From positions 12,399,133 to 12,463,132 of the forward strand of contig OZ037771.1 in NCBI GenBank assembly GCA_964035545.1: 64,000 nucleotides of DNA, in the 5' to 3' direction. The translations under genes and the position numbers were made by a program. Each line of letters starts with the position of its first letter. Within the stretch, counting starts at the first letter, position 1. The notes below the pieces were generated by a model that did no database searches, was not told the origin of the DNA, and was given only the letters and a program-made list of their open reading frames with translations. This DNA comes from Bugula neritina (lineage: Eukaryota; Animalia; Bryozoa). This document shows, one piece after another, positions 8,501 through 44,900 of the stretch.

Positions 8501-10083
8501 ACACAATGTTACAAAATGAAGCTAACAATACAGCTTTGAAATTATATATATTTCAAAAATTCAATCAGTCTACACTTAGAAATCAGAGCTGTATTATATG
8601 TCCTCAAATTGAGACTTGACATATTTAAAAAAGCCATGAAATAATATATGTTTAAGTATTAGATATCACACATGTTTCATGTTGAAGTGTTAGGAAGCAC
8701 CTGTGATCTAGTGGATAAAGTGCTATGGTCATTGGTTCAAACCCCAGTATAGGCCATGCCTGGAAAGACATCTGTATAATATATACTTGTTGTTTTGTTA
8801 CAAGAAGAATACCTCAAAACCATGGCAAAAAATTCCTTACCATCACTTGAGGAATTTGCAAATGGTTGGAAACTTAAAACAATTGTGTGAGATTATATTA
8901 TTTGTAAAGATTATGGGCCATATTTTATTTTATTATGCGTCAGCAAGTTCCAATCAAAACCTAAAGTTTGCTCAAAGTGCGTAGAAGTTGCTGTATGAAA
9001 AAATTTTATATGATGAGTTTAATTATGCACAGCAAACAAAAGCTGGTAGAGAATCCTGCTACATTAAACCGCAATGTCATCGACATATGTGCTAAATAGA
9101 GATGTGCGAAGCATAATTCCTTTTTCATCACGGTCCGCACAACCCAATTTACTAAAAAAGAGGAAAAAACATAAAAAGTTGAGTTATTTAGTTGTCTAAT
9201 TTGTTAATGTGTTTAGGTTAAACCCTACTATATAAAATAGCAGCTAAATTGTAAAAAATAGCTAAAAACCAGAGATATGGAGTGTGTACTAAATTAAGTA
9301 AAATAACCCATACGGTATACATTTAGTGGCTGCTGAAATTTAGAATAGAGAAGTAAGACGGATCAGTAACATAATATGTTAATAAATAAGCTTAATTGGC
9401 TTGAATATATATGTATTTTCAGTATAGTAATATAAAATGATATTTGCTGATGCATTGTGTTACAGATACACTAATCAATATTACTTAATTTTTAATTAGC
9501 AAGAATTTGCAATTAACAATCAACATAGCTTTAGGTAAATCACAATTAAGAAATCAACAACAAAAAACAATAAAAACTTGTTACGGCCAGATAATTACGC
9601 TTATAGTTGGAAATGTTTGTTATGTCATTTACACTCACTATATATAACACAATATAGTACGTTAGTAAAAATGGTTGATTTCAAAGAAATTTATTTGGAG
9701 ACTTTTTTGCTATATATTGTGAGTGATGTGCTATGCAGCAAGTGATACTTGCAGCTTATTGGCTATGGTTTGCAATATTTGCAGCTTATTGGCTGGTGAT
9801 GGTTACCATGACTACAGTTGGTTATGGAGATGTATACCCTACAACTATTGGTGGTTATATAATCCTGATAGTAGTCATGGTGGTTGGTCTCATGGTAACA
9901 GCTTTACCTGTGGCTATCATTGGAGGAAACTTCACTCTGGTCTACGAATACAATGATAAGAGGAACAAGAGACTTCGAGCACTTGAAGAAAGAGCGGACA
10001 ACTCCTCTACTGATAACAGCGTGTCCACCTCACTCACTGATGTGGATAACGACCTTGATGAGGTCATAGTTCTAAAGTATTGA
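5512..10083 (+). CDS. Voltage-gated K+ channel alpha subunit, paralog A (T1 + S1-S6, non-Shaker type); exons 5512-5520, 6317-7341, 7907-8070, 9785-10083 (alternative acceptor 9755)
   Basis: T1 domain INISGQRF...YPDTRLG...LHCPKNVC...LEFWGID...ECC with the HX5CX20CC Zn motif of Shab/Shaw/Shal; S4 KQVRCIR; pore TMTTVGYGD; S6 LPVAII; exons join in phase. Confidence 0.92.
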
Positions 10084-25614: not shown

Positions 25615-27388
25615 ATCTGGCATTGAGAGTGTCGAATAGACGTCGACTCAGTAGATTTGTGGTGCACCCAGTATCCAACAGGAATGTGACAGCTTTGCCA
25701 GCAAGTTTGCCAGGGAGGAAATAGCTGCTTCCATATGGCTGAGCCCTCACTGAGCAGTTTGTCTCTTGAGGTGACACCTCATGTGCATGGAGTTGGGGAT
25801 GCACCTGTGCTTTTCGGTTGTGAAGGGGTTGTCGACGTCACGTGGGCAAGCAGGTTACATCTCGGTCTTGCTCACACCTGGGCGGCCGAGTGAATTCTCG
25901 AACTGGTCCTCGTGTGGGCAACCGAGGAAAATCCCTGTTGTGCTCCCATTCGTCGTTCACTCCCTCATCAAGCAAACCTTCAAAGCGGTTTTTGAGTGCC
26001 CAAGCCGGAGGTATTGGTGGGCCTTGCGGCCGACTCACTCTCCTTGGGGCTTGCCACTCTGGCGAAGGCGGCCTCCTCACCCGGTGGGGTGGGGGCCGTA
26101 GCCTCTGCCTTGGGGGGTTAAACTGGGGCCCACGGTAGGCGGAGGTTACCGTGGGCCATCGCTGTTTAACCGCCTCCCACTGCCGCGGGGGCAACTTCGT
26201 AGGAAGTGCCCACCACTACCACAGCCCCAGCATACGGGGCCGCGCCTGTCGTCGACAGCTACCGACGACTTCTTGGGTCTCTCGGCTGTCGCCTGCTGGC
26301 GCAGTTGCCTGATCTCGGCTAGCAGTTCTCGAATCAAGCTCGTGGTTAAGCTAGTAGATTCGTCTGCTGCTGCCGCTGCGACCGGTACAGCTGTCTTCGC
26401 TGGCGACGTCGACACGTCGTCTGCCCCGACCTGCTGTACTGTCGCACCAGGTCGACTTGCACTGTCGGCTTGGAAATAGGCATTCCCAAGCCTTAGAGCT
26501 CTCTCCATAGTCTCAACTTCGGCCACCAGCAGATGCTGTTTCAGACCGAGGTTGTTAATAGACTGGAGGAATGCATCCAGTGCTAGGCTCTGTCGACTGT
26601 CGGCAGGCAAGTTGCTGTAAGCAACTTGTGCCAGTCGTTCGACTACGGTAGCATGCTCTCGCAGATTGGTCTTAGGATTTCTCCTAAGACTCTGCAGTTG
26701 CACGCGAGCATCTCGAGCGGTTAATCCAAACCTAGCTCGTAGTGCTTCAAATATGTCACCGACATTCTGGCTTATCCCATAGGGTTTAGCCGGCCCTGTC
26801 AGACACAACCGCAGCTGGATCAGAGTAACCCTGTTCGGCCATCCGCAGATGTCCGCCACATCACTAAACTCAGTGATGAATTGCTCCACATCTTCTTCCC
26901 CTGAGAAGATGGGAGCCCGCAAGTGGTACCTGTCCATAGGCAGCGCTGGGCCGCCTATGTGATCCTCCTTTATTGCTGCTGGCTCCTGTGGGGGCGCGTC
27001 GACGACTTCGTCGGCCATCTTACTCCCTGGCTAGGGGCATTTGTATTAAGTGGAATCCCACCGCTGCCACCAGTGTAGTGAATTTTGCCAGTTCACTATT
27101 ATTATGTGTGGGTCAACTTAATCAAAGCCACTGTACCAGGTTGTTTACGATAAGATACTTTATTATTTACACAAATACAAGAAGGTTATTTACTGCTAGC
27201 ATGAATAGAAAACGATTACATAATTAGTGAGCTTTAACACACAACTACTCTAAATGAAGTCCCAAGCTGCTCTGCCGGCTAGCTACTCTGCGCACTGCAA
27301 CTACGAGTAGCTAGCTCCACCTGCTATCAATTAGTGTGACTGTCCTGATTGGTGGTTACTAGTGGTGCCACTGCTGTCCATAGCTACA
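25615..27388 (-). mobile_element. 3'-truncated Ty3/Gypsy retrotransposon: 5' LTR (27388-27074), tRNA-Leu PBS, gag, protease
   Basis: TG...CA LTR; PBS tggtggcagcggtgggatt complementary to tRNA-Leu 3' end; gag with CCHC; protease FLLDTGC; homology lost abruptly near 25615. Confidence 0.88.
26146..27018 (-). CDS. gag: Retrotransposon Gag (290 aa, intact)
   Basis: FSGEEDVEQF...W capsid-like region; CWGCGSGGHFLRSC zinc knuckle. Confidence 0.88.
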   Translation of the reverse strand: MADEVVDAPPQEPAAIKEDHIGGPALPMDRYHLRAPIFSGEEDVEQFITEFSDVADICGWPNRVTLIQLRLCLTGPAKPYGISQNVGDIFEALRARFGLTARDARVQLQSLRRNPKTNLREHATVVERLAQVAYSNLPADSRQSLALDAFLQSINNLGLKQHLLVAEVETMERALRLGNAYFQADSASRPGATVQQVGADDVSTSPAKTAVPVAAAAADESTSLTTSLIRELLAEIRQLRQQATAERPKKSSVAVDDRRGPVCWGCGSGGHFLRSCPRGSGRRLNSDGPR

Positions 27389-27565
27389 ATCCGACAGTGT
27401 CGAACTTACAATATAATAAACACTATAAAGTGAACCTTTTCGATTAATACAATAATAATTGCACCACTAAAATCTATCACAATATAGTAGTTGGCCAGTT
27501 AACTTTTGTTTATACATGTCAGTTATGCTTTGAAACTTAGAAAAATACATGTGCATTTATTGTAG

Positions 27566-29219
27566 CATTTGCTATGACCATGAAGTTAGATATCCTCTTG
27601 TTTACCAATCACCTGATGACTGCAAAGAGCTTCTGGTTGTTGGTAAGGGTGCAACTATCAATGTTCAGGATGTTCTTCGGAAAGCAGTCTGTCAGAGTCA
27701 TTTTAACTCTTTTACAGTATTTACTAAAAACATTGACGGATTGTTGCACAGTAATGAGCTTATCGGGGGCTCACTGCATAAGTTCAACACTAAAAAGTGT
27801 ATCCAACTGATGGATGGTTTATACTTGACTATCAGCACTGCTGTTTGTGAGTTAGTGATGAAAGGAAAAGTGTTAGATCCACTCAATCCATATACTGGCT
27901 ATTTTGCAGTAGTACCAGCACACTTTCTTTTAGAGAAACATGAATGTGAAGAATTGTTAGCAGAAAGTGTAACACCTGAAATATTAAAACGCATGAAAGA
28001 CAAAATTGAAAAATCGACACTTCGCATGAAGATGTTCAACTTCATTAAAAAACTTGAGTTAAAGTTTACTTCTTTCTTGGCTTATCGTCATTACAGGGTA
28101 GAAGAAGCTCCTCCTGATCACTACAAGTCATATCTTAATAATCTTGTATTATTAAAACTTGATCCACATCAACTTCTCCTCGACTCAAAAACTTTAATTC
28201 CTCGTTCAAACATTGAAAATGCAATGACAGACATTTTCACTCCAACGGGATTGAAATGCTCAATGGGTGAAATCCTGCCAATCCAGGACCCAAGAGATTT
28301 AGCAACCATGGCAATGGCAGAGGTTCGTGTTAGAGTCGGGCATACAAATGGCTATATGGTTCTTGGTGGATCATGGAAGCCTTCAAAGAAACAACGAAAG
28401 AAGGGTGCTGACATTGAAAGACAGTTTCTTCATAACATACAGTTTGTAGTAGAAGACTGCGACTGGTAGGAAAAACTAGTAGCTTTATGAATTTTCAGCA
28501 TAAAAACATAGTGATATGTTTTAAGACTGTAAATTTATAAATTGGTTTACTGTTTTGTTTTTGTTTATTTTAGGCCTTTAAAAAATGGGGATAGTGGTAC
28601 TGTTGTCTATGTCATTGATGCTCACAATCAATGCCATTATCGCCTTGGAATGCTGGTGGGGCATTTGCACAGAACCCATCGTAATGGTAAAGCAGTTTTT
28701 CAAGCAGTTGTGTTAAGCCAAGCTCTTATGGAGATCGAAAGTAAAAACAACGATTGTATTCAAAGTTTACAACTCTTGAATCAATGCAAAATTGAACCTC
28801 ATTTCACTGATAACCGAAGCTTTTTATGCCATAAAGATAACGCTACATTAAGGCTTAACCAAGGTCATAATCGTAGTAGCTTTCGTTCAAACAGCCACTT
28901 GAAAAGACCACACAGTGAACCATATGGTGTAAATGCTCAATCAACCACGAGTAGACAGCAAGATGGCCTTCACAATACTATCCAGAGTCATAACAACATG
29001 TATCGAAGTGTTTGTGATCCTGAAGATGCATCAATTGAAGAAGAACAAGGTGAATCCCTTCAAAACGTTTTCCCACCAGACCCCAATGGTGCAGCGGCAA
29101 GTGGGTGGCATAATCCTTATACAACTTCTCACAGAAAACCATCCTTCACTTCAGCTCAACAGTGTCAAGCTTCAGATGAAAGTCTTTTTGGTAGCCAATT
29201 CCTTTTTGACAAAAAGTAG
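27566..29219 (+). CDS. Uncharacterised divergent trypsin-like protease, paralog 1 (triad His/Asn/Ser); exons 27566-28465, 28574-29219; upstream exon(s) unresolved
   Basis: GYFAVVPAH, YLNNLVLLKL, LKNGDSGTVVYVID, LGMLVG; colinear with paralog 2 and identical phase-2 introns. Confidence 0.75.
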
Positions 29220-29333
29220 CTTGTAACGCCTATGAATGTACAAGAGTAGATATATCTCCTCACTGGCTAGATATATCTCCTCACTGGCTAGTTCCTGGCA
29301 AAACCAATTTTAATTATATAAATTTATAATACT

Positions 29334-32300
29334 TGAAACATTAAGTATAGTGAGTATATAATTACCTGAGAGTTACTCGAAGTATGTAGGCATGACATTG
29401 AAGCATCGAAAGAACAATAAACTTAAAGTGGGGTCTGGCCGGCCAGGGGAAATACAAGGACCAAAAGTATAGTACTGATTTATAATTATTTTATCACAAA
29501 GTCTATCGGCGTGTTTATCTACTGTAGGCTGACATCTTTCATCTCTTAGTCTCTCGTTCGTCCTTGACCCAATATGTATTTTAATAAACAAATGCACATG
29601 ACATTATAACGTAGCATCTCGCTAGTCCGTAATTAGTGATAATATAACATCTCCCTTCTTAAGCAGGTGACTTCCTTCTATAACATTGTGATTAAGGTTG
29701 CTGAGATTAATAATATGATACGAGTATACATGATTAATATATGGATTGGGGATTAACAATGAAACTAAATAACTATGTACAGGGTGGGAAACGGCTAATA
29801 GCTTATCCCATGTGGAAGTCCTTGTATTTAGCGGGGAGGACTCCACGGTTGCTTCTGGGTTGACGCTCTGGTGGTGGTGCCGCGTTCCTGAGAGGTGTTG
29901 CAGGCAGGGCAGGCATGTGGGGGGATTCATTAGGAGCATCTCCAACATCAGTATCAGCAGCATCAGCGACACCAAGGGTCTGTGTGTTATCTGGTTTGAG
30001 GTGAACACGATTCCTACGCACTATAGACTGACCGTTGTCAACCAAGTAGGATCTGGGGGAGTCATGCTGTTCGACAATCATTCCTGGCGACCATTCTTTG
30101 TCAGTGCTTGACCTGATTAGTGCAGGAGTCCCAGGTTCCAGATCAGCCAACGGCCGTGCATGGCGGTCGTGGTACTTCTTCTGCAAGTTTTGGTTGGCTA
30201 TTAGTTGTTGGCTAGCCTCAATAACAACTGGTTTAAGCGACTCGGCAGTGATTGGCAAATCACTTCTTAGGGCTCTGTTGAACAGAAGCTCAGCTGGACT
30301 GAAAGCACAGCCAGTGATAGGAGATTGCCTGTATCTGAGTAGTGACCTGTATATATCCTCTCTTTCATCCTCACATTTTTTTAGAAAGGCTTTCATCGTT
30401 TGCACATAACGCTCAGCCATTCCATTGGACTTAGGGTAGTGCGGACTAGATGTTACAATGGTGAAGCACCAGCTTGATGCAAAAGTCTGCATGATTCTAC
30501 TGCTGAAAGGCATGTTGTCCGCCAGAATGGACACTGGCACCCCGTGTACAGCAAATATGGATTTCAATGCCAAAACCACGTCTTCAGCAGTCTTTCTCCT
30601 GAGTAATCTCAGCTCGGGAAAGTGAGAGTAACAGTCCACAACTACCAAGTAATCATTATTCTTATAGGACAGTATATCCATAGCCACTTTATTCCATGGT
30701 AGACTTGGCAGCTCATGAGACATTAACGGCTCTTTCTGTTGACGGTTGGAAAACTTAGCGCAGGTGAGGCAACTTGACACTTCATTCCGTATATCAGCAG
30801 ATAGCCCAGGCCAATAGAATGATTTCCTCGCAAGCTCTCTGCATTTCTCAACGCCCAGGTGGCCCATGTGTAGCGACTTTAGAATGTGCTTCCTCTGTGA
30901 CTTCGGAACTATAAGCCGCTCTTCAACGTAAAGAAATCCATCCACATCATAGATGTCAGATCTAACATTCCAGTAGGGTTGGATTTCTGTGGGGGCCTGA
31001 CTCCGTCTACTCCATGACCAACCATCTTGCAGTGCTTTTTTCAGACTGTCCATTGTCGGGTCTTCAGCATATGACTGTCTCATCTCATTCATGGTGCTAT
31101 CATCGGTTTCTAAGGCATGAACCATCACAACTTCACCTTCGAGATCACACTGATCATTTGTAACGCGCTGAAGGTAGGCTTGGGATAGTGTGTCAGCAAT
31201 ATATAAATACTTGCCCGGAACATATGTGAACTCAGCTATCCGGTATCTTTGCAGTCGCAGAAGTAGTCTTTGCAGCCTTGGGGATGCCTTGTGCAACGAC
31301 TTGTTCATTATCGGGACGAGAGGTTTATGATCCGTCTGTATGTGAACAGCACGTCCATAGAGTTAGCTGTGAAAGCGCTCACAGCCGAACACAACTGCTA
31401 GCAGCTCCTTATCTATTTGGGGATAGTTGCACTCAGTCTCAGTTAAGCTGCGTGAAGCGTATGCAACAGGTTTACCTTCCTGTAGTAACACTGCACCAAG
31501 TCCCGACTTTGAAGCGTCAACTTGTAAATGCGCATCCTTGGTAACATCAAAATACTGCAAGACAGGTTCAGATGTAAGCAAGCGTTTAATTACCTGGAAG
31601 CTTTCCATTTGTTCTTTGGACCACACCCACTGACTATCACTCTTCAGTAGCACTCTCAAGGGCTCAGTACAGGCTGACATGTTGGGTATGTAGGCTCTTA
31701 GAAAATTGAGAGTACCAATCAGTCTTTATACTCCCTCTCGGTCTGTTGGGTCAGGCATGGCCTCAATAGCAGCTATCTTGTCTGGGTCAGGACGCAGACC
31801 ATCTTTCGATACTATATGGCCTAAATAGCGTACCTCCGTCTGATTCAACTGAATCTTCTTGCGATTAAACTTCACATTAGCCTCTTTGGCCTTTACCAAT
31901 AGCTTTCTCAGATTGGCATCATGTTCCTGTTGTGTCTTTCCAGCTACAATGATGTCATCAAAATACACTGAGACACCAGGCAAGTCTCCAACTATTTGCT
32001 CCACCTTCTTCTCAAAGACTTCAGCACTTGAGTGAAGACCAAATGGAAGTCTATCAAAACAGTAGCGACCATATGGGGTGTTGAACGTTGTGAGCAGACT
32101 ACTCTCTTTGGTCAAGGCTACATGCCAGTATCCATGTTTCATGTCCATGATGGTGTAGTATTGCATACCATTGAATCTGAAGGCAATGTCTTCTAATGTG
32201 GGTATCTTGTGATGTTCTCGTCTCACTGCTCTGTTCAGGTCCTTGGGGTCTAGGCATATACGAACCGACCCATCTTTCTTTTCAACGCATACCATACTAC

Positions 32301-34158
32301 TCACCCAGTTGGTTGGTACGTCAACCTTAGATATGATTCCAGATGCCTCCATATCATCCAGTTCCTTTTTCACTTTGTCTAACATACTGAGTGGGACACG
32401 TCTTGGATGATGAACCACAGGCTTCACATTCTCGTCAACACATATCTCGTGCTCTCCATCAAGTCTGCCAACTCCTTCAAACACCTCAGGAAACTCCTGA
32501 AGTATCGAGGTTGACAACTGATTAACTCTGCGGATCAGACCAAAAGATTCAGCAGCCTCGAGGCCAAGTATGGGAGGAAGGTCCTCATCAACCACCTCGA
32601 AGTGGACACTCTGGCTAGGCTCCTTGTGGTTCACGGTGAGTTGAACTGCACCCACATTCTTGATCTTGGCCTTATTATAGCCGTAAAGGCATACAGAAGT
32701 GGGCTTTAGAGTAGCACCAAGTGACTGAACGGTTCTTAGGTTGATGCAATTTGTTTCAGCTCCAGTATCAATCTTAAACTGAATATCATTGGCCTTTCCT
32801 TTGTCACTGACCTTCATCGGAAGAATCCAAGATTTCAATTTAGATTCATTAGAAAGAGCACCAACAGCACCTATGAACAAGCTATTCATTTGTTTCGCTG
32901 CAAGAGCTTTGCCTTTGCAGACTTTCTCAAAGTGATTTTTCTTCCCGCAGTTATGACATGTCTCGCCATAAGCAGGACATCTACCTTTGGCATGTGTATA
33001 TCCACAAAATTTGCAATCTATGTTGTCCTTACGTGTGTTACTTCTGGTTTTATTTTGCGTAGCGCCAGGCTGACTCTGCACAGTGCTGACTGCAGCATCA
33101 TTTATCTCATTGACTGTCTTCATAGTAGTATCACCGGCAGCCATCCTTGACATCTGATGTTTGGTAATCTCAGCAGCACGGATGTCATCTAAGGCACTCT
33201 CAAGTTTAACGTTTTTGTCACGGAGTAGCCGTTCCTTCAGCTTTCCATCAGTGAGTCCAAACACAATTCTGCAGAGAAGCATTCGGTCTCGCAATTCGCC
33301 AAAATCACATTTTGTAGCTTGAGTTTTTAGACGTTTCACAAAGGTGTCAATGGGCTCTCCATCACTCTGACTGAGAGACCAAAAAACAAACCATTCATAC
33401 AACACGTTACGCCGGGGATTGCAATAGGCTTCAAACTGCTCCAAAACATCAGCCATAACATCCTTGCTTTTACCTGCGGGAAAGTCAAATTGACCATAAA
33501 TCTCAGTAGCTTCCTCACCAGCCTGGTTCAGAAGTATAGCAACCTGACGTCTATTAATACCCGCATTCTCAGGAGGAGGCTCTTGGCCACTCTCTTGAGG
33601 CTTCAAAACCAAATCACTTGCAAGCAAATAATTTTCCAAGGCCCTTCTCCACTTCCTCCAATTGTCTGACACATTACCTTCAAATGATAATTCTCCAGGG
33701 GCCTTCAAACCTTCCATGACAGCTCCAAGGCAGACCAACACAGTCCACAACAACAAACAACTAAAAGCCAAACAATCACCACTCCAGTGGCAAAGTAGGG
33801 TGCGAGTACGATCTAGCTGCCACCATGAAACATTAAGTATAGTGAGTATATAATTACCTGAGAGTTACTCGAAGTATGTAGGCATGACATTGAAGCATCG
33901 AAAGAACAATAAACTTAAAGTGGGGTCTGGCCGGCCAGGGGAATACAAGGACCAAAAGTATAGTACTGATTTATAATTATTTTATCACAAAGTCTATCGG
34001 CGTGTTTATCTACTGTAGGCTGACATCTTTCATCTCTTAGTCTCTCGTTCGTCCTTGACCCAATATGTATTTTAATAAACAAATGCACATGACATTATAA
34101 CGTAGCATCTCGCTAGTCCGTAATTAGTGATAAACAAAAGACACATAATAATATAACA
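29334..34158 (-). mobile_element. Full-length Ty3/Gypsy LTR retrotransposon (Mag-like), ~4.8 kb; LTRs 34158-33826 and 29649-29334; TSD ATACT
   Basis: Near-identical TG...CA LTRs, ATACT on both flanks, PBS tggtggcagc, PPT aagaagggaga; one frame with two zinc knuckles, PR (IDTGA), RT (YFDD), RNase H, integrase. Confidence 0.96.
29803..33717 (-). pseudogene. gag-pol polyprotein broken by two in-frame TAA codons (31728-31726, 31365-31363)
   Basis: ORFs 31726-33771, 31363-31680 and 29803-31308 share one frame; intervening codons read as pol (RLIGTLNFLRAYIPN; LYGRAVHIQTDHKPL). Confidence 0.9.
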
Positions 34159-35240
34159 ATACTGAAACTGTGATTAATTTAAGATTCTACTTACAAGCGT
34201 TGTTTTTCCATATTTTTACCAGGCACTGCCAAAACATTCAACTGCTGGAGGTGTGCGCAACTCACCATTTTAGCACAGCTTAAGCTTGAGATACAAACCT
34301 TGATAAAGATAGCTGGCCAAGCAGCTACTATTTAAACTTAATGTATTCTTTCAACGGCAAGCCAACTTTGGTGCATAGCTGAAATAATGCTGTATAGTGA
34401 TGAATGCCAACATTTATTTTTTACAAACATGTTCTAATTCAAAAACTACTTTGCCTTCTGTTTTAAATTGTTAGACGACTACAATATTTTTATTCATATT
34501 CTATTTTATATATGGCTATATGCATGCTTTATTAGTACTTAAAATTTTAGCATTCCAATACGTATAATATAATAACATTTCACATATACCCTGGATTTCC
34601 ATTGCTTTGCATTATATAAAAATATTTTTCATTTGATGTTTGGGAACAAAAATCTATCCACAGGATTTACGTATTCATATGAAGAAATAATAAAAAAAAT
34701 TAGTGTAGTAAAAAATATTATTAGAGCCATCGAGCAGTACACGTTGCGTCAAGTTGACGGCCCTGAATAACAATATTGTGAATATAGAGACTAGGTCAAG
34801 GTAATTTTTATCGGACTTGCAAGTTAAATCATTCTGGCAATATAATTTAACTAACTCAAAGCTAGGTCAATTAATTTTGATATATTGTGATTGGTTGATA
34901 CAAGTTGTAATGCTAATTTTATATTAAATTTGTTGAGTTTTATAAAAATTTTGTATGTAAATAATTGGTTGTACCCCAAGACGTCCGTTTTGTGCTCCAA
35001 GACGTCCGTAATATGGATATAAATAGAGTTGTAATTTTTAGTAGCAGTCAGTCGACTGTTGCCTGTTGTAATGTTTATAATTGACTCTTATAAATATAAT
35101 AAATTTTATTCTTTGCGAAATACTTTGCTCTTTGATTAGGTTGCTATTGAGTTGGCAATAGTGGTGGTTAGTTTCTATAGGTTTGTCAATGGTGATTACT
35201 TGCGCTGCAATTCCTGTTGAATCTTGGTGATTCAAATCCC

Positions 35241-35527
35241 AGGAATCTGATTTCTGTCACTGTCTCTGACTACAGCTGCTGTGATATAAATCGGCGAACC
35301 ATAGCCGTGTCCCTGTCATGCTCCAGCACTGTTACCGAACACCAGAAATCATTTTTCCACTGTAGTGACTCTCTTGCGTTGCGGAATTCCTGTCGAGTCT
35401 CTGCGATTCAAACATCAGGAATCAGATTTCTGTCACTGTCTCTGACTACAGTTGCTGTGATATAAATCGGCAAACCATAGCCGTGTCCCTATCACACTTC
35501 AGCACTGTTACCGAACACCAGAAATCA
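35241..35527. repeat. ~110-bp direct repeat, two copies ~176 bp apart
   Basis: aggaatc(t/a)gatttctgtcactgtctctgactacag...gttaccgaacaccagaaatca twice. Confidence 0.85.
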
Positions 35528-36439
35528 ATAGTCACTGGAAAATATTAAAATCGCATTAGCAAATAATTTGGCAACAAACAGTATTAGATAGTTTAATTAG
35601 TTTTCCGCACAAGGGAATTCTATTCCGACCCTCATTGTTAAGTGAGATTACTTACCGTCAATAGTGACACCTGGTGTCAGACACAAATTTACTTCATTAG
35701 TAACTACATTGTTGATGTTTTTCTTTAACTTTCCCATTAAATAAATAATTTCATAGCATCAGCACTATGGCACCAACATTTTATGTATAAGCAACTAATA
35801 TTTTGACATAATTTATTGCATTTTTTTCTAAAATGTTGACAGTAGGTAGCTGTAATAGTATTGCATGTATGTAAAGTTCAATGATATATCTTTATTTAGA
35901 AAACACAACTAATCACACCAAACACATCTTCAAGACTGATGATATATAAAATAGCTTTATAAAGAATCAATTAGTATGACCATACTGGTTGTTTCCAAAG
36001 CCACAAAAAAACTATTTATGGCGTACAGAAAAACAGCACAATTACAGTATTCACAAAACAGCTTACAATAATCGCGTGATGCAATATCATGCACATTACA
36101 GTTGCTAATATGTTGTGTATCAAAGCATTCACCAGCATTCACACTTAATTATAATTCATGATATACTACAATATTTTTTCTTTTATAAAAATATAAAACA
36201 TTTAATTTCCTAGAGCAATATATATGTACTTTTTGCAAAAACTAAAATAAGTTTGCAATAGAAGAGCAATATTCAATTATTCAATCTTATGGCTTGCTTC
36301 AAAATCTTCAGCTATATAGATGTGTTCCCCATTGTCAACTTTTGTAGGATTTATAAATAGCTATGCTTTTAATTGATTATTAAAGATGTAAAAAGTGCTA
36401 TTATAAAATACATATACATAATTAGGTGTCTGCGGCAAC

Positions 36440-39400
36440 AACTGGTAGCCGAGCGGCTTGTTTGGCCGCCGTCAGGTACTGCTGGCAGTTGCCCCCCAGC
36501 CTGTTGGGAAGTGTGGAAATAAAGGACACTTCCACGGGAACTGTTTACACACTGAGAGGATATGGTTAAGCCTCAATGTCCCAAGGTAAAATCCGTCAAC
36601 CATGGGCTTTGAATAACACTTCCAGGATCAAGGCCAAAGCCCAAACCCAGTAGGGTGAGGAGGACGCCTTTTTCAGAGTGCAGCGCTGCACCATTTCCGA
36701 ATACTCTGGGGTTACAGTTTTTTTGTCAAAGTAGCAAGCACCCAAGAAAGTTAGCAGACCTTTAGGTTTGACAAAACCTCCGGCTTTGCCATTTAAAAAT
36801 TGCATTGAAAGATTGCAGGAGAAAACAATGTACGAGAAGTGGGAGCAATATCGAGATTTCCCTTGACTGCCCACAAGTCCTCGAAAACCCTTCGCAATCG
36901 GAAAGCATGGGTGCATCCCAAACTCTATGCAAACTTGTCAGCAAAGCTGCAACATTACTGTTGGACACAGGGTATACAACCAATCTTTTGAGCAGGCATC
37001 TCTTTGACACACTAAGTACACAAGACAGAGCTAACCTGGAGCCATACAAAGGAGAGCACAGCAAATTTGTGAAAAAGTCGTGCATTCCATTTCATGGCAT
37101 GATTGAGCTGACGGGATAAGTCCGTGAGCAGGTAATCAGCGAGACTTTCATCGTCAGTCAGCTGAAGGAGGATGCCGTATTAGAGATGTCATCACCAAAA
37201 AGACACAAGTGCCACATTGACTTTAACAAGTCGTCTGTGATGTGGGCTGGGCTTGAGCTCGCTTGTGTTTATAAGTTTGGCAGGCCCTTGGTAGGGGAGT
37301 GCAGGTGGTGCGGCCCTGCAACATTCAGGGATGCTCTCGAATTACAGTTTGCTGCAGAATGAACTGTAAAAAATACTTTGACTTAAGAATGGTCGAAGGA
37401 ACACTTGGTGCGTCTAGCTCCCAAACAGTCTGAATTGACTGCTCGAATGTAGAGAGTTCCTGACACAGTGCAATAACCCTTTCACGGAGTGAGAGGAGTT
37501 GCCGGCTGGCTTGTTAGTGAGGAAGCTTTACTCTGTGCAGGAAGAGGATATAGGGCTCAACATAGAGAATGCAGAGAAAACCCGTGGAGTACTCCCTACG
37601 AACGACAGAGGACCGGTACCAAAACACTTGGTATATTTGTATGGGAATGCATGTGATGGCTGTGAGAATAACAGGAAAATCCAGATAGTTGTGCAATAAC
37701 TCTCTGTGTAAAAAGATGTGTTCAGTCACAATTACCATGATATGGTGGTAGGACGGGGCCGATTTTCTAGCCGAACCGCCAGCTAGATCCTGGAAAAAAA
37801 ACAGAAGTGAGCTGTTAGGTGCAAGATCTTCTGAGCTGAGACCTGATTTAGCCAACCTATAGTACTTAGAGCTCTCAATCTGGAGGTTTTGCATAAATTA
37901 TTGCAAACTGAACAACGTGATCATTTAGCACGCTTACTTTCTTTTAAGAATCAATAAGTAGCTTGGATGTCTTAGCTGGTAGCAAGTTATTCAGTACGTC
38001 AATATTTGCTGAGCGGGTACCGGCAGGTGCCTTTGAGTCTTAATGCACAAGACAAGGTAGCGTTTATAATGTAGGATGGGCTCTGGAAATGGAAGATGTT
38101 ACCGTTTAGATTTACATCCACTGCGGCCACGTTTCAGCGACTCATGGAGCAGGTCTTCAGAGGGTTACACTGGAAGACACTGCTCATCTACCTCCATGAT
38201 GTCATTGTCATTTCCCCTGACTTTGACACACATTTTAATTCACTCAGGGAGGTGTTTGAGAGATTTGAAACTGCTGGTCTAAAGATCAAGTCCTCTAAGT
38301 GTGAGTTGTTGCACCCAGAAGTAAGGTACCTAGACAATGTAGTTAACCGGGACTGAGTAGCTACCGACCCCGAGAAGACATGAGCTGTAAGAGAGTGTGT
38401 GGTTCCTCTGAACCTCCTTGAATTGCAGACATTTCTTGGGTTGGTAAGGCACTGCAGGCAGTACATACTCAATTTCGCAGAGATTGCACAGCCATTAAAG
38501 CGGCTGACAGCAAAAAGGGCTTGTTGGCAGTGAGCAAATCAGTAGGCATTTGAGCACCTCAAGGATTGCCTGATGCAGGTACCTATCTTGGTCTACCTCG
38601 ATCTGGTGAAGAAGTACATTCTGGACACTGATGCTAGTAACCACAATGTAGGAGCTATGCTGTCTCAGATTCAGGATGGTCGTGAGATGGTAGTGGCCTA
38701 CTACAGTAAAACTATCTCGACTCCTAAAAAGAACTACTGTACTACCAGGCAAGAACTCCTGGCCGCATTTAGGTCAGTGAAGTGCTTCAGGCCAAATCTG
38801 TATAAGCTGATGTTCAGGCTGCAAATGAATCATACTTCCTTGCTATGGTTGTGCAAGCGAGCTAAATTTTCAAGCCAGGTTGCTCGTCGGCTTGAGATTT
38901 TGCCTGAATGTTCATACCGGATCGAGTACCGATCCAAAAGAAAACACGGTAATGCCAATGAATTGAGCCGGCGGCCTGGAGAGTAGTGTAAGCAATGTCT
39001 TAATAATGAGTCCAGGAATGGTAGACCCCCCTCGCTCAAATGTAAAAAACAGATGGAAAAAGCGAGTGCGTATAGCTGAGAAGAAGGCAAACTCCGATCC
39101 AATTCCTCCAGCGCTGTCAACAACCTTAATGTAAACCTTACACTCTTTTGAAACGTCAAAGAACTTTGCAAATTTCAAGCTACGCTACCGGGGATGGTAG
39201 CCAACTTAATCCGGGCCAAGAAAAAAGGACGGCGACCTAGTGAGGCTGAACAAAGGGTAAAGTGTGCAGAGCTCAAGTATTTCTGTGACCATTGGGACTT
39301 TATCATGTTCAATAATGATAGGTTGTTAACAATAGCGTTAGCAACCATTGTGGATGACCAGGAACATGAGAGGGTAGTCTGTCCGTTTGCCCTTCCTTAG

Positions 39401-40424
39401 GAGCTAATCTGGGACATTCATAAGCAAGCTCATGCTGGAGCTGGGCGAGGGGCTACGTGCCTTCAGCTTTGGTGGTAGTTGCCCGGGATGACCCGGATGC
39501 CCGACTGCGAGTGCGAAAGTGTGAGGTATGCCAAGCTAGCAAGCATGGCCACTCCACTGAGACCGCGGTAAGGCACTGCCTTCATGCCGGTTGTCTGTGG
39601 CAAATAATTGCCGTAGATTTGGTGGGCCCCATGCCCACGCCTGAGAGAGGTTATAACTGGATACTAGTGTAAACTGACCACTTTACGTGGTGGGCTGGTG
39701 CTCTGGTTACTCCTGTCGCGTCAGCCTTTAGGTCGGCCAAGACCCTTGATCAGAACGTGTTATTTTGGCTTGCTGGAACAAATGCACACTGATCAGGGTG
39801 CCCAGTTTTAGTCGCAGCTGGTGAACAATCTCTGTAAGGCATGGGAGGTCAACCAGAGCCGGACTACCCCATACCATCTGCAAGGGAATGGTGTTGTTGA
39901 GCAGAACAATCCTATGTTAAGCAACTCTCTAAGAAATCTGCTACTGGGTAAAAGTAGGGCTTGGTATTGCAGCAAATCATGTGAGCATTCCGTAAGTACG
40001 CTTCCTCCAGCACACTGGAGATCCTGAACTTTCTTATGGATACATAGATGAGCTCATCACGCGTATGAAGACAGCTCACGATATTCTATGTGAACAGAAT
40101 TGGCAGTTGAAGGGTGAAGGCGCTACGTAACTCTAAAGCTACACATTACTACGCTACAGTAGTCACATGGAAAATCAGAATGATACGCTACACTACTTTT
40201 CATTGTATTGGCTAATGATCACCTAATCACGCTTTGTGTTACAACAGCTGCGAGCATATAAACAGGCAATCATACGCCAGCCCCACGCTTCCTTGGAGTA
40301 AAGCTGTCTTAGTTTAGTTGCTTGAGTTAAAGCTTAATAAATTATTTAGTTTCTTTCCATCTTGTGCCGGTTTTCTCACTCTTATATTATTCGCATGCAA
40401 TAAATGTTATCTATACTCGCTACA
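36440..40424 (+). mobile_element. Decayed Ty3/Gypsy element (end of gag, PR, RT, RNase H, integrase, probable 3' LTR); related to 25615-27388
   Basis: LLDTGYTTNLLSRHLFDTL (cf. LLDTGCTTNLLSRRLFDTL), ATFQRLME...IYLHDVIV, YILDTDAS, AVDLVGP, TTPYHLQGNG; many stops and frameshifts; ends approximate. Confidence 0.88.
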
Positions 40425-41484
40425 CTTGGACCATTGATTTGAATAGTTCACATCAGCACCTGCATCGCACATAGCCTCAATAACCCACATACTGTGAAAC
40501 AACAATATCATCCAAAAAATCTATAGAAAAACTGTACATTATTATTATTTATTTGGAATTTTGTAGTAAGCTGTAGCAAAAATAACGATTCAGCAACAAT
40601 AATGGGTGCTTTCTATTGATTGTAATAAATAAAGTGTGTGGCATTCCTCTCACACCAGAGGGCACAGACAGCAGTCTAACAAAACGAGTTAATGCATAAA
40701 AAGTAAATGAATATTGAACTATAGACTCTGAAACTTTTAATTCTTATGAAATACCAATTAGTATGCATAACATAACTAATTGAAAGCTAACAATATTCAA
40801 AATAAAAAAATCATACCACTTTTTGGCTGTTTGACCTTCTGAAGCCCTACTGCTTTATGTATGTGGTAAAATAAACAATAGGGTTGAATTGCTGTTGCAA
40901 GTGTCAGGCAGACCTTAAAAGTTTCAACTTTATATTTTAAAAGGTTTGAAGAGTAAGTTCGAGGCCTGGCTGTGGTTTCCTAGACCTTATAGAATTTAGT
41001 GATGCCAATCACAAAATATGCAATTTAGAACATGTATTCTACTTTTCAACTAGTTAAGTAGAATGATAGCTTAATAGCTATAATAAAAACTTTTTCTATA
41101 TTTAATTGACTAAAAGAAAACAACAATCACTGCGTATATAAACACTATACTTCTTAGCTATATTTAAGCAGCTCATTATTTGCATTAGACTAAGGATATA
41201 TCAAATACATTGTTTTTTGCCCTCCACAGTTTTATGTTTGTCTAGGTGTGGAAGATTATATACAGTTGAAAGGTTTCTGACAACAAACAAATATAAGCTA
41301 CTTTCATTTACTTCCCTGATGGCATTTTGCCTAAATCACTGTACATATTGCATGAATCAATCGAAGCAACTTTTTAAGAAGCTAGGGTGTGCCTACATAA
41401 TGATCACAAGCACCTAAAACTTACAGCTAACTAAAAATATATACTTTTATAAAAACAATTTTTTTTACTGTTCTAATTGTTGCC

Positions 41485-44400
41485 ATGGATAAGACTAAGA
41501 ATGTTACAATTCTAAATAAAAAAGCCTACGGGAAAGCTGATGATTGCGCTGGAGGTGTAAAGTTTAGTGATACTGATAAGGCAAGTGATGATAGGATGAA
41601 CAATGGCATTTGCGTTTGCGATCTGAACACTAAAGCAAATCATATATATATGTTTAAACTTCTGTTTTGTAGCATTTCGACACTACGATGGGATGTATTT
41701 CAAAAAGAAAGTAAACAGAGCGACTTATTTGTTGAAGTCAGCCATTTCTGCAACTGAAAACATCGAAACGGTACCAAGTGAATTGGTAACCCTAATAGAA
41801 ACGTAAGTATAGTTTCAACTTTGCTTGTCTAACAGCTTAAATTGAACATAAATTCTTTGATTATTGTATTATTGAAAGTATTTTAAACTTTGAAGTGACA
41901 CTTATACATGGTGTCAAAAATGTATGGCTTCTATATAACCTATTATTAAGATTCACTTTTATAAAAAAAACGTTAAGCCTTTTTCACAAACAAAAGGTTT
42001 CTTAGCAAACTTTGTATATGTAATGCATAAGTCATGGTCCTTAAAATCGTAACATGCAAATCTTTGCATATTAAAGCTTAACTTTAGTACAAATGCTATT
42101 TTCAAACACAATGGCGTCATTGCAACAAATTACAGAAAAATTATGTAAAACATGTGTAAAGAAAAAGTAATTTCTAAAGTTTAAATAGTTTAAATTGACA
42201 AGAATTACTAAGAAACTTTTAGCTGCTCAAGCATAGTATGATTCAACTAACAAATATTGTAGTAACTTGTGAGTTTTTGAATGCAGTCAGGTACAGAACA
42301 TAACTCCTTGCGTGTGAGTAGTGAAAGATGAGAGGGTTTTTTGCAGTGTGCGTAAAATAGATTTAGTAATAATGAAGTAGTTCCTTCTAGTATAAGCTCC
42401 TGTCTTCAACTGACTTACAAGCTTACAATTTACATCCTTTTATACTGGTACAAAAGAGTGTTCGAGAAGCTTACCAGACTAATTGTCGGCCAAAGTTCGG
42501 AATGTCGGAGTTTCAAGTGATCGACATTTGCATGGTCAATTAGTCAGCCGACAAGCCGAACTTTGGTCGCCAACTATTTACATGAATCAAACAAAAAATA
42601 AAAATGAAATGAAAGGCGAGTAATCGCAATTTAATAATATGTAATGAGGAGATAACTCTACAGAATACCACAATATATGCCAATCTCAAATTGTATCAAA
42701 AATCTTTTAAAAATATTTAAGATGCTATACTTTAAGATAAATTCAACTCAATAATCATTATAGTATATAATTTATTAAACAAAAAAATAAAAAATTTTGA
42801 ATCAAAAAAATATTTTGTCATAAAATCAAATGACCATTGCCCAAGTGAAATCATATGAAACCAGTTTCAAAATTTATCTGCAAATATAATTTTTGTTTGC
42901 ATGATTTTTAATCTTTAGTTATTTAGAGACACTTATGATTCAAGACTCAGCAAAAAGCAGCATTATTTATACTATAAATATTGACAATCAAATTGAAAAA
43001 GTAATTGCCCTCACTGGACCCAAGACTTCTGGCTTGCAAGCAATTTTGCTAACCGTTACACCACGAGGACGACTGAGTAAACTCAACACTACATCCCACC
43101 CAGTTCTCTGAACCCCACTGGCTTATCTACTACTCCTTCAGTTTTCAGGCTCCCCTAGTCACTCAACTCTTTTGGAGTACTACTACACTTCACTAAAGGC
43201 TGAAGTAGCTTGAAAAAAAACTGCCCCCACTGGGAATCGAACCCGAGACCTTTAGCTTGCAAACAAGTGTGCTACCATTACACCACAAGACCACTGAGTA
43301 CACTCAACACTACAAAATCAAATATTATAGCATACCTTGTGTCACATATGACTATAAAATTAGTTTTTAAATATTTCAGCAAATGCCTTGAAAATAGTGT
43401 GACATCATTGGAGCTTTACGCATCACCCGATGATCATAAAGAATTGCTCGTAGTTGGGGAGGGAATATCTGATACTCTACAAGATCTGCTTCGATCAATC
43501 CTCAAAAGCAATCAAAATTACCACGAGTTTAAAATAATAACACAGCGCCTTGAAGGGTCCTCACACATCAAACATCTGTCAAATCCAGGAACAAATGTCG
43601 AAGTTATTAAAAAACTTTTTAGAGGGTCAACGTTAGAGACAACAAGATTTGCAACTTGTGAGTTGGTGCTAACAGGAGATGTTAAAGATACAAAGTCTCC
43701 ATATGTGGGGCACTTTGCACTGGCTCCTGCCCACTTGGTGCTTGAGGAACGTCAGTGTGAGGAGTTGTTGAAAGCAGATGCGCCATCTGGTGCTTTGGAA
43801 CACATGAGAGACGTTGTCGCTAGAATCAGTCGCAAAATGCGATATGCTGTTGAAACAAAACAGACAAGTAAAAGCATAGATCTACTCATGGACTCATCGC
43901 TGCTGATTTATCGTCATTACAAACATGAAAAAACATCTGAAAATGATTGTAAGAGTTTTTTAAATGATATTGTTTTGTTCCCAATACAATACCGCCACTT
44001 GATTGATCCTGAAAACTTGAAGCTGTTTGCACAAATGAATACAGCTTGTGACGGATCAACGAAGCCTGGTTTAAAAGCAAGCATGATCTTTCCTTGCTCT
44101 GCTGAAGATTTGAAGCAGATGAGTAGACGCAGAGTCTGTGTTAAGGTCAAAGGTGCTGATGGTCACATGGTACAAGGTGATTTGAGGAGGGAAAACATGA
44201 CTTTTGATCAAGGAAAGAGAATGGTTCTGCACCACATACAGTTTGTTTTAGAACATGGCGTGTGAGTGTTACACATATTTATTCTAGTCCCAGCATATCA
44301 CATTTATTAGATCATTTATATTTATATAACATTCCTGTTAAAAAGATTAAATAAGATTGGAATAGATTAAAAAAATTTTCTATAAAATTAAAATTTTTTA

Positions 44401-44900
44401 TCAAGAATGTTGCAATAAAAATTAAACGACACTAAAAAGTGATGAGGATTAAGCACTGTAAAGTTCGTCAACATCACTATAGAAACAAAAAAATTAAAAC
44501 TTTGATCAGTTTGTTTGCTGTCAACATAATATTTCTAATTATATACTTTGCAAACACGCTTAAATTTGTGTATAGTAATAAATTTATATGATGATTGCAT
44601 CATTGTAGCAAACTGATAAAAGGTGATAGCGGCAGCATTGTATGTGTCATTGATGTCAAAACAGATCGTCTCTATCCAATTGGGATGCTGATAGAAGAAA
44701 GCATTAGAAAGCATACCAATGAGCAGTCAATATACCAGGCAATAGTCTTGCAGCAAGCTCTTCAGGAGATTGAGCTGAACAACGCCGGCTTTGTCAGAGA
44801 TCTGAAACCCTTCGCCTATGAAGAACTGACTCCTGGTGCTCAGGTGGACCTCAGAGATGCAGTCAGAGACTCTGGTGTTGGTGAAGAAACTAAACTTTAA
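41485..44900 (+). CDS. Uncharacterised divergent trypsin-like protease, paralog 2 (His/Asp/Ser intact); exons (41485-41554 tentative), 41673-41803, 43380-44261, 44609-44900
   Basis: GHFALAPAH, FLNDIVLFPI, LIKGDSGSIVCVID, IGMLI; last three exons join in phase; start exon tentative. Confidence 0.75.
42484..42574. repeat. Short inverted-repeat element (MITE-like), intronic
   Basis: tgtcggccaaagttcgg ... ccgaactttggtcgcca. Confidence 0.55.
43222..43292 (-). pseudogene. tRNA-like sequence (tRNA pseudogene or SINE head); second decayed copy ~43006-43070
   Basis: A box tggtgtaatgg, B box ggttcgattcc, tttgcaa loop, followed by T8; acceptor and anticodon stems pair poorly. Confidence 0.65.

Follow-up and report, generated by a model that had tools for sequence, protein, structure and literature searches.

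NAL1 of rice is a hexameric, intracellular protease for which several structures are available (PDB 7y77, 8pmg, and 8hau), and the literature treats it as a plant-specific protease. It has a non-canonical ATP-binding domain (residues 89-172) and a serine protease domain (residues 184-458; PMC12012508). The FAM111 proteins are another group of intracellular proteases of the PA clan. FAM111 orthologs carry the Pfam domain Trypsin_2, those of vertebrates have in addition two N-terminal ubiquitin-like (UBL) domains, and FAM111-like proteins have been reported in marine invertebrates (PMC9798293). NAL1, FAM111A, and the HtrA proteases are all dependent on oligomerization. No paper describing NAL1-like proteases of animals was found in the literature searched, the coverage of which was limited. 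Two such genes, P1 and P2, may be present in the 64-kb stretch of DNA analyzed here (the window; positions 12399133-12463132 of contig C7 in a 216-Mb animal genome). The window has approximately 33% G+C and is rich in retroelements. P1 and P2 probably encode NAL1-like intracellular PA-clan proteases of a bryozoan family, P2 being a complete gene and P1 a degenerating, truncated duplicate.

The exons and catalytic codons of the two genes are listed below. The codons were read directly from the sequence.

27566-28465, plus strand: P1 main exon, 900 nt, encoding a small N-terminal domain and most of the protease domain (open reading frame, ORF, and splice sites read directly)
28574-29219, plus strand: P1 last exon, encoding G-D-S-G, the end of the second barrel, the C-terminal helix, and a low-complexity tail of about 150 aa; stop codon at 29217-29219
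41673-41802, plus strand: P2 upstream exon, ending in the helix motif V-P-x-x-L-x-x-L-I and followed by a GTAAGT donor
43380-44261, plus strand: P2 main exon, carrying the His and Asp codons
44609-44900, plus strand: P2 last exon, encoding G-D-S-G with the Ser codon, the C-terminal strands, and a helix; stop codon at 44898-44900
27921, 28140, and 28593, plus strand: P1 catalytic codons, His (CAC), Asn (AAT), and Ser (AGT), respectively
43732, 43966, and 44628, plus strand: P2 catalytic codons, His (CAC), Asp (GAT), and Ser (AGC), respectively

Between P1 and P2, identity is 34% across 306 aa of the main exons (E 5e-44) and 43% across 65 aa of the last exons (E 1e-15). This resemblance is far above the chance level. 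In both genes, the acceptor ahead of the main exon consists of a pyrimidine tract and AG, and the main exon opens on a third codon position. At its other end, two codon bases precede the donor, GT(G/A)AG, and the third base is supplied by the last exon. The two introns have the same codon position and the same phase, phase 2, in P1 and P2. An earlier note on this DNA had described two plus-strand paralogs with identical intron positions, a set of shared motif blocks, and six catalytic codons. The exons were located, direct reading of the splice sites bore out the intron positions, every motif block was recovered in the sequences and alignments, and all six codons were found where the note had placed them. 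The long low-complexity tail that it attributed to P1 is real and is common to the closest paralogs of P1, L003 and L004. A similar disordered tail is also present in a homolog from Watersipora.

The fold was modeled on P0015 (Watersipora XP_067946649), a public full-length homolog of the P1-like group, with an alignment of 107 sequences, and not on P1 or P2. The model (predicted local distance difference test score, pLDDT, 82; predicted template modeling score, pTM, 0.78) contains the two six-stranded beta-barrels of the PA clan. It matches NAL1, HtrA1, FAM111A, DegS, alpha-lytic protease, thrombin, and the 3C proteinase of hepatitis A virus (HAV). When P0015 was searched against the PDB with Foldseek, rice NAL1 was the top match (E 7e-8, about 440 columns), followed by HAV 3C (E 1.5e-5), thrombin, uPA, and factor B. 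Among the clusters of the ESM Atlas, those nearest by sequence features are annotated with Nal1_C, Peptidase_S64, or Trypsin, and those nearest by structure are S1 peptidases. In the viral library BFVD, 3C-like domains and polyproteins of Picornavirales are matched at E ~1e-6. A PA-clan double-barrel fold is thus predicted for the family from the homolog model, as had been proposed when a trypsin fold was read from the letters.

The order of domains in the model, a small domain and then a serine protease domain, is that of NAL1. Because the NAL1 match also spans the S-P-D-D-x-K-E-L-L-V-V-G block, and residues 89-172 of NAL1 are the ATP-binding part, this block and the part that follows it would occupy the place of the ATP-binding domain. 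The order of His, Asp, and Ser is the same in both. No signal peptide is present in the solved N-terminal domain of NAL1 or in the bryozoan N-termini, and both lack the disulfides of S1A proteases and a zymogen activation site. There are also differences. Sequence identity is only about 10-12%, and the insert between His and Asp has 81 residues in the bryozoan family versus 57 in NAL1. Half of the bryozoan paralogs use Cys, unlike NAL1. While NAL1 has been described as plant-specific, the bryozoan family is found in animals and is heavily expanded.

The catalytic motifs follow one another in the order P-A-H, (F/Y)-L-N-D-I-x-L, and G-D-S-G, which fits the conventions of S1 proteases (as around Asp102). 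Of the informative rows in the 107-sequence alignment, 94 of 96 have the His and 92 of 94 the Asp. Asn is found at the Asp site only in P1 and in one metagenomic fragment (P0058). Among the 26 loci that the family has in this genome (L028-L053), His is present at every one and Asp at 25, P1 with its Asn being the sole exception. The family thus has the residue order of the PA clan, His, Asp, and Ser or Cys, with a G-x-S/C-G motif, and P1 itself departs from it at the Asp. A change from Asp to Asn is expected to lower the activity of a serine enzyme by orders of magnitude.

The nucleophile is Ser at 11 of the loci and Cys at 14. All of the Ser codons are AGT or AGC and all of the Cys codons are TGT or TGC, so the two states are one base, a single transversion, apart. 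In the main-exon tree, all Ser-type loci but one (10 of 11) group together (support 91/95); therefore, one or two switches between Ser and Cys suffice to account for the pattern.

The members of this family would be endopeptidases of PA-clan fold, expanded in bryozoans, acting inside the cell, and closest to NAL1 in architecture. A small beta-alpha domain (S-P-D-D-x-K-E-L-L-V-V-G) would be followed by a double-barrel protease in which a long helical insert separates His from Asp. The His of P-A-H would act as the general base and the Asp of L-N-D-I-x-L would orient it. The nucleophile would be the Ser of G-D-S-G, or the Cys of G-D-C-G in about half of the paralogs, and the backbone amides of the G-D-S-G turn would form the oxyanion hole. 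We infer this catalysis from the established chemistry of the PA clan. By analogy with NAL1, HtrA, and FAM111A, activity could possibly be gated by oligomerization and the N-terminal domain could possibly bind a nucleotide. The prediction of a homodimer of P0015 residues 1-370 scored 0.00, which is not evidence either way.

The 26 loci were found by six-frame searches and are spread over seven chromosome-scale contigs. A main exon is followed by a last exon at all 25 loci for which a last exon was found. A main-exon profile searched against 1.84 billion representative proteins matched 189 clusters at E <=1e-3 and 120 at E <=1e-10. Names were looked up for 30 of these clusters. Thirteen carried a name, always that of an "uncharacterized" or "hypothetical" protein, and came from Bugula neritina or Watersipora subatra, both of which are cheilostome bryozoans; the remaining ones were from unnamed assemblies of metagenomes or read archives. 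The public protein closest to P2 is EB796_017213 of Bugula neritina (88% identity). A word-based profile search with alignment A3 returned 8 proteins and added nothing. The earlier note had called the family lineage-specific, and every named homolog is indeed bryozoan. Its word "unrecognized" was also fair. The protease module was not recognized by Pfam in the four exon products, ten long homologs, or any of the 107 alignment members, and PDB sequence searches (one with a single sequence and two with profiles) gave chance matches only (E >0.1). As a side observation, the distant Ser-type member P0079 is encoded without introns, as a single ORF of 1134 nt on short metagenome contigs (L020-L022), and could be either an intronless lineage or a transcript-derived sequence.

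In the full-length bryozoan models, which are Watersipora and Bugula proteins, the module is found in several settings. It can stand alone with disordered N- and C-terminal extensions. It follows a GTPase domain of the GBP type in P0054, precedes leucine-rich repeats (LRRs) in P0125 and P0144, and follows about 550 residues of ankyrin-like repeats, which were recognized by eye, in P0153. Architectures with GBP, LRR, and ankyrin parts are typical of innate-immunity proteins. From these fusions, the expansion in copy number, and gene conversion, one may hypothesize that the family has a role in defense or regulation.

The N-termini of six full-length RefSeq models from Watersipora are all hydrophilic or disordered. 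In the full-length bryozoan models, a helix motif, (I/V)-P-x-x-L-x-x-x-I-x-x-L, directly precedes the main exon, and this motif was used to look for upstream exons. The P2 upstream exon was found in this way, and the intact P1-like genes L003 and L004 have one as well, separated from the main exon by 289-310 nt. A candidate start codon of P2 is the ATG at 41693, the Met of which is conserved in L002 and in the B. neritina ortholog together with the upstream exon. If translation starts there, P2 has approximately 427 codons by arithmetic. No signal peptide was visible in the full-length models or in the upstream exons inspected, including that of P2, which agrees with what had been noted for the exons first recovered. 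The proteins are therefore predicted to be intracellular. The upstream exons of P1-like genes (L026 and L027; residues ~40-120 of P0152) also contain a conserved PPxY in an acidic disordered region, in the form P-P-D-Y in Bugula and P-P-A-Y in Watersipora. To judge from the motif, it could be a candidate docking site for a WW-domain protein or a NEDD4-type ligase.

P2 is the conservative copy. It has retained both the upstream exon and a complete triad, and of the pair that it forms with L002 it evolves the more slowly, with 87.7% identity to the B. neritina ortholog versus 83.5% for L002; polarized substitution counts for the two, with B. neritina as the outgroup, are too few to interpret. 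P2 would therefore be a complete, conservatively evolving gene, and its product should be active. In B. neritina itself (VXIV02002571.1; L023 ~9929-9931), a stop codon closes the main-exon frame of the P2 ortholog upstream of a G-S-S-H-I-K segment, and the annotated ortholog of 213 aa is only the part after that stop. This stop could reflect either an assembly error or a broken ortholog.

P1 has a different history. At the DNA level it is homologous to L003 and L004 only from 27481 to 29338, and the 5' breakpoint lies 86 nt inside the intron that precedes the main exon.

27481-27565, plus strand: final 85 nt of the P1 intron, from the point (27481) at which similarity to the parental locus, L003, sets in

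P1 is without an upstream exon because the homology starts within this intron. With the peptides of 66 residues encoded by the upstream exons of L003 and L004, tblastn gave no match in the 64-kb window, and a scan for the helix motif in the 10.5 kb upstream of P1 revealed no upstream exon. The surrounding DNA indicates where P1 came from. The window block 27481-43000 matches, in inverted orientation, the region from L003 to L002 that is located about 450 kb away (C7:11977627-11991700, at 11.98-11.99 Mb), and both copies contain a P1-like gene and then a P2-like gene in tandem. Positions 27481-27596 are 94.8% identical to the intron-exon junction of L003, 34158-34704 are 95.8% identical to its 3' flank, and for 38767-41609 the identity to the DNA ahead of L002 is 93.4%. 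Since the flanking identity is 93-96%, the block from the P1-like to the P2-like gene was duplicated recently. This intergenic identity is much above the 82% found between the gene bodies of P1 and L003.

Within its gene body, P1 is a mosaic produced by gene conversion. The center of the main exon (27860-28250) is 95-99% identical to L004. The tail exon (28990-29190) is 90-94% identical to L003 and only 66-70% identical to L004, and the intron at 28448-28509 is similar to neither. Because the Asn codon lies within the L004-like tract and L004 has Asp, the change from Asp to Asn in P1 would be very recent. P1 also appears to evolve about twice as fast as its sister. Its branch length is 0.12 versus 0.054, its identity to the P1-like protein of B. 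neritina is 74% versus 85% for L004, and its lineage-specific changes number 45 nonsynonymous and 17 synonymous versus 22 and 20 in the sisters (Fisher p 0.04).

The origin of P1 might then be reconstructed as follows. A block with a P1-like and a P2-like gene would have been duplicated with a breakpoint in the intron before the main exon, and the 5' exons would have been lost at that breakpoint. The copy would later have been patched by gene conversion from L004 and would then, very recently, have undergone the change from GAY to AAT. If it is expressed from a new promoter, its product would be a strongly attenuated, N-terminally truncated protein. That P1 itself is a degenerating truncated duplicate is on balance favored.

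Several observations weigh against the view of P1 and P2 as NAL1-like proteases of which P1 is degenerating. The two reading frames of P1, of 299 and 214 codons, remain open, and none of its indels shifts the frame. The pairwise ratio of nonsynonymous to synonymous rates (dN/dS) of P1 is 0.40-0.49, which is no higher than among the intact sisters. The lineage test is marginal at its p of 0.04, and gene conversion may distort the counts. Translation of a truncated P1 protein could begin at an in-frame ATG (27549). Between the modeled homolog P0015 and P1, sequence identity is about 30%. When just the main exon of P2 was folded (13-sequence alignment), the model was poor (pLDDT 62), as is to be expected of a second barrel that the intron divides, and Foldseek with this model returned only ribosomal noise (TM 0.15). 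The Pfam model Nal1_C (PF25819) had no significant match among the 107 members, the best being E 0.12 for one member, and the predicted link to NAL1 would be structural only. A six-frame search of the genome with Nal1_C also gave no match, but the control genomes were likewise silent, so that this search carries no weight. The family would look and work like NAL1, yet it is not filed as a member of the NAL1 family because the Pfam sequence test failed.

A first alternative is that P1 has been maintained as a pseudo-protease, attenuated or acting as a decoy, that works with the active P2 and might serve as a regulator in mixed oligomers or as a substrate trap. That each copy of the block has a P1-like gene in tandem with a P2-like one favors such a partnership, as do the intact frames and the dN/dS of 0.4-0.5. 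Mixed assemblies are conceivable given that NAL1, HtrA, and FAM111A are oligomer-dependent, and a second Asn-bearing member exists in P0058. However, Asp is kept in the intact P1-like genes L003 and L004 and in the Watersipora ortholog, so Asn is not a feature of the P1-like clade. P1 is also missing the conserved upstream exon, its Asn codon lies in the tract that is nearly identical to L004, pointing to a very recent change, and it evolves faster than its sister. Maintenance as a decoy is thus unlikely, although it is the strongest of the alternatives, and the small share of probability that is left for P1 belongs to other outcomes, such as an assembly error.

The earlier note had read the locus as a lineage-specific family of intracellular proteases in which an active enzyme is joined by a partner that is weakened or a decoy. 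The part that stands is the unrecognized PA-fold family, which is confined to bryozoans among named sequences and has no signal peptide. The pairing of enzyme and decoy found no support in the form proposed, as P1 is the sole copy of 26 without the Asp and is 5'-truncated, mosaic, and faster-evolving. The dN/dS comparison that the note had suggested gave pairwise values for P1 like those of its sisters. The range and copy number that it had wanted checked came to 189 public clusters and 26 genomic loci. Its comparison with NAL1 was apt, as NAL1 is the best structural match and is clearly above FAM111A.

A second alternative is that the family consists of divergent orthologs of vertebrate FAM111, which has antiviral and replication roles, and is not NAL1-like. 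FAM111A and FAM111B resemble the bryozoan family as intracellular PA-clan proteases with an N-terminal accessory domain, and in both cases a small beta-alpha domain is located N-terminal of the protease. Both evolve fast and are possibly linked to defense. The FAM111-like proteins reported in marine invertebrates also fit this alternative (PMC9798293). However, Trypsin_2 is matched by 0 of the 107 members, although FAM111 orthologs carry it (PMC9798293), and the two UBL domains were not recognized. The structural comparison places NAL1 5 Z units above FAM111A and covers the N-terminal domain as well. FAM111A is level with HtrA, DegS, and alpha-lytic protease, so the structural score of the bryozoan family for FAM111 is no better than for HtrA or DegS. 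Descent from FAM111 is accordingly very unlikely. The HtrA, DegP, and DegS proteases (S1C) differ from the bryozoan family as well, which has no PDZ domain and no Pfam match, another N-terminal domain, and the long helical insert.

A third alternative, that the family is a captured 3C protease of a picorna-like virus, would account for the members with G-D-C-G, and the 3C and 3C-like proteases of Picornavirales do share the PA fold, a His/Asp(Glu)/Cys triad, and G-x-C-G (found at 14 of the 26 loci), with Foldseek values of E 1e-5 to 1e-6 that include HAV 3C as the best PDB match other than NAL1 and polyproteins in BFVD. However, viral 3C proteases are parts of polyproteins with a Cys nucleophile, whereas P1 and P2 are of the Ser type and the Cys-type paralogs are intron-bearing cellular genes, stand-alone or fused to cellular partners (GBP, LRR, and ankyrin), with conserved introns on seven chromosome-scale contigs. 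No polyprotein or RNA-dependent RNA polymerase context was seen at the loci inspected, the match to NAL1 is better and longer, and Cys needs no viral origin, as the nucleophile codons of Ser and Cys members differ by one base. Viral capture is the least probable of the three and is hardly to be expected.

A secreted S1A protease was ruled out, as the hallmarks are missing: there is no Pfam Trypsin match, the N-termini are hydrophilic or disordered, P-A-H stands in place of A-A-H-C, and the alignments contain no conserved Cys pairs, which confirms what had been said of the absent S1A pattern. A transposon-encoded protease was also ruled out, since the retroelement ORFs to either side run on the opposite strand and belong to separate insertions. 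Two retroelements flank P1.

26146-27018, minus strand: gag-like ORF of 290 aa with a CCHC zinc knuckle (translation read), a retroelement fragment located where the P1 upstream exon would sit
29334-34133, minus strand: young long terminal repeat (LTR) retrotransposon of 4.8 kb, with LTRs of 309 nt at 29334-29642 and 33826-34133 that are 99-100% identical and with reverse transcriptase and integrase ORFs

The gag-like ORF had no match in Pfam, and its knuckle was read directly from the sequence. Fragments related to it also occur near L004. The LTR element is inserted about 115 nt after the stop codon of P1, and homology to the 3' flank of L003 resumes at 34158.

Two further features are found in the 5' part of P2.

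41485-41757, plus strand: ORF of 90 codons that starts with M-D-K-T-K-N; its conserved counterpart in B. neritina (L023 4391-4645) is a separate gene call of 84 aa ahead of the P2 ortholog
43205-43290, just upstream of the P2 main exon: stretch that resembles the reverse complement of a tRNA (T-arm and an acceptor-like part)

In this genome, the frame of the M-D-K-T-K-N ORF does not continue into the next P2 exon, and the approximately 1.9 kb that lie between the 84-aa gene call and the next exon in B. neritina are missing here. The ORF may be a 5' exon of P2 or an upstream ORF. The tRNA-like stretch may be the head of a tRNA-derived short interspersed nuclear element; ARAGORN found no tRNA gene in it.

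An animal family with the two-domain architecture of NAL1, which has gone unseen by Pfam, would extend the NAL1 type of protease to Metazoa. The bryozoan family would also serve as an outgroup for research on NAL1. The switching between Ser (AGY) and Cys (TGY), with His and Asp being kept, would be a natural test bed for the exchange of the nucleophile in a trypsin fold. The expansion to 26 loci, the tandem and segmental duplication with gene conversion, and the fusions to GBP, LRR, and ankyrin parts are like those of fast-evolving innate-immunity families. To our knowledge, immunity in bryozoans is almost unstudied. P1 and P2 also carry a caution: for the broken triad seen here, recent duplication with truncation is a better explanation than a decoy by design.

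A more speculative proposal, which is unlikely at present, is that bryozoans have an intracellular surveillance or effector system built from NAL1-like cage proteases. In such a system, Ser and Cys subunits would be interchangeable, P1-like and P2-like products of tandem pairs would co-assemble, fusions to GBP, LRR, and ankyrin parts would link the sensing of pathogens to proteolysis, and catalytically weakened copies such as P1 would act as regulators or decoys. Brenner, in the "two serines" argument, reportedly proposed an interconversion of AGY-Ser to TGY-Cys. If the proposal is true, a single protease family would provide a living case of that interconversion.

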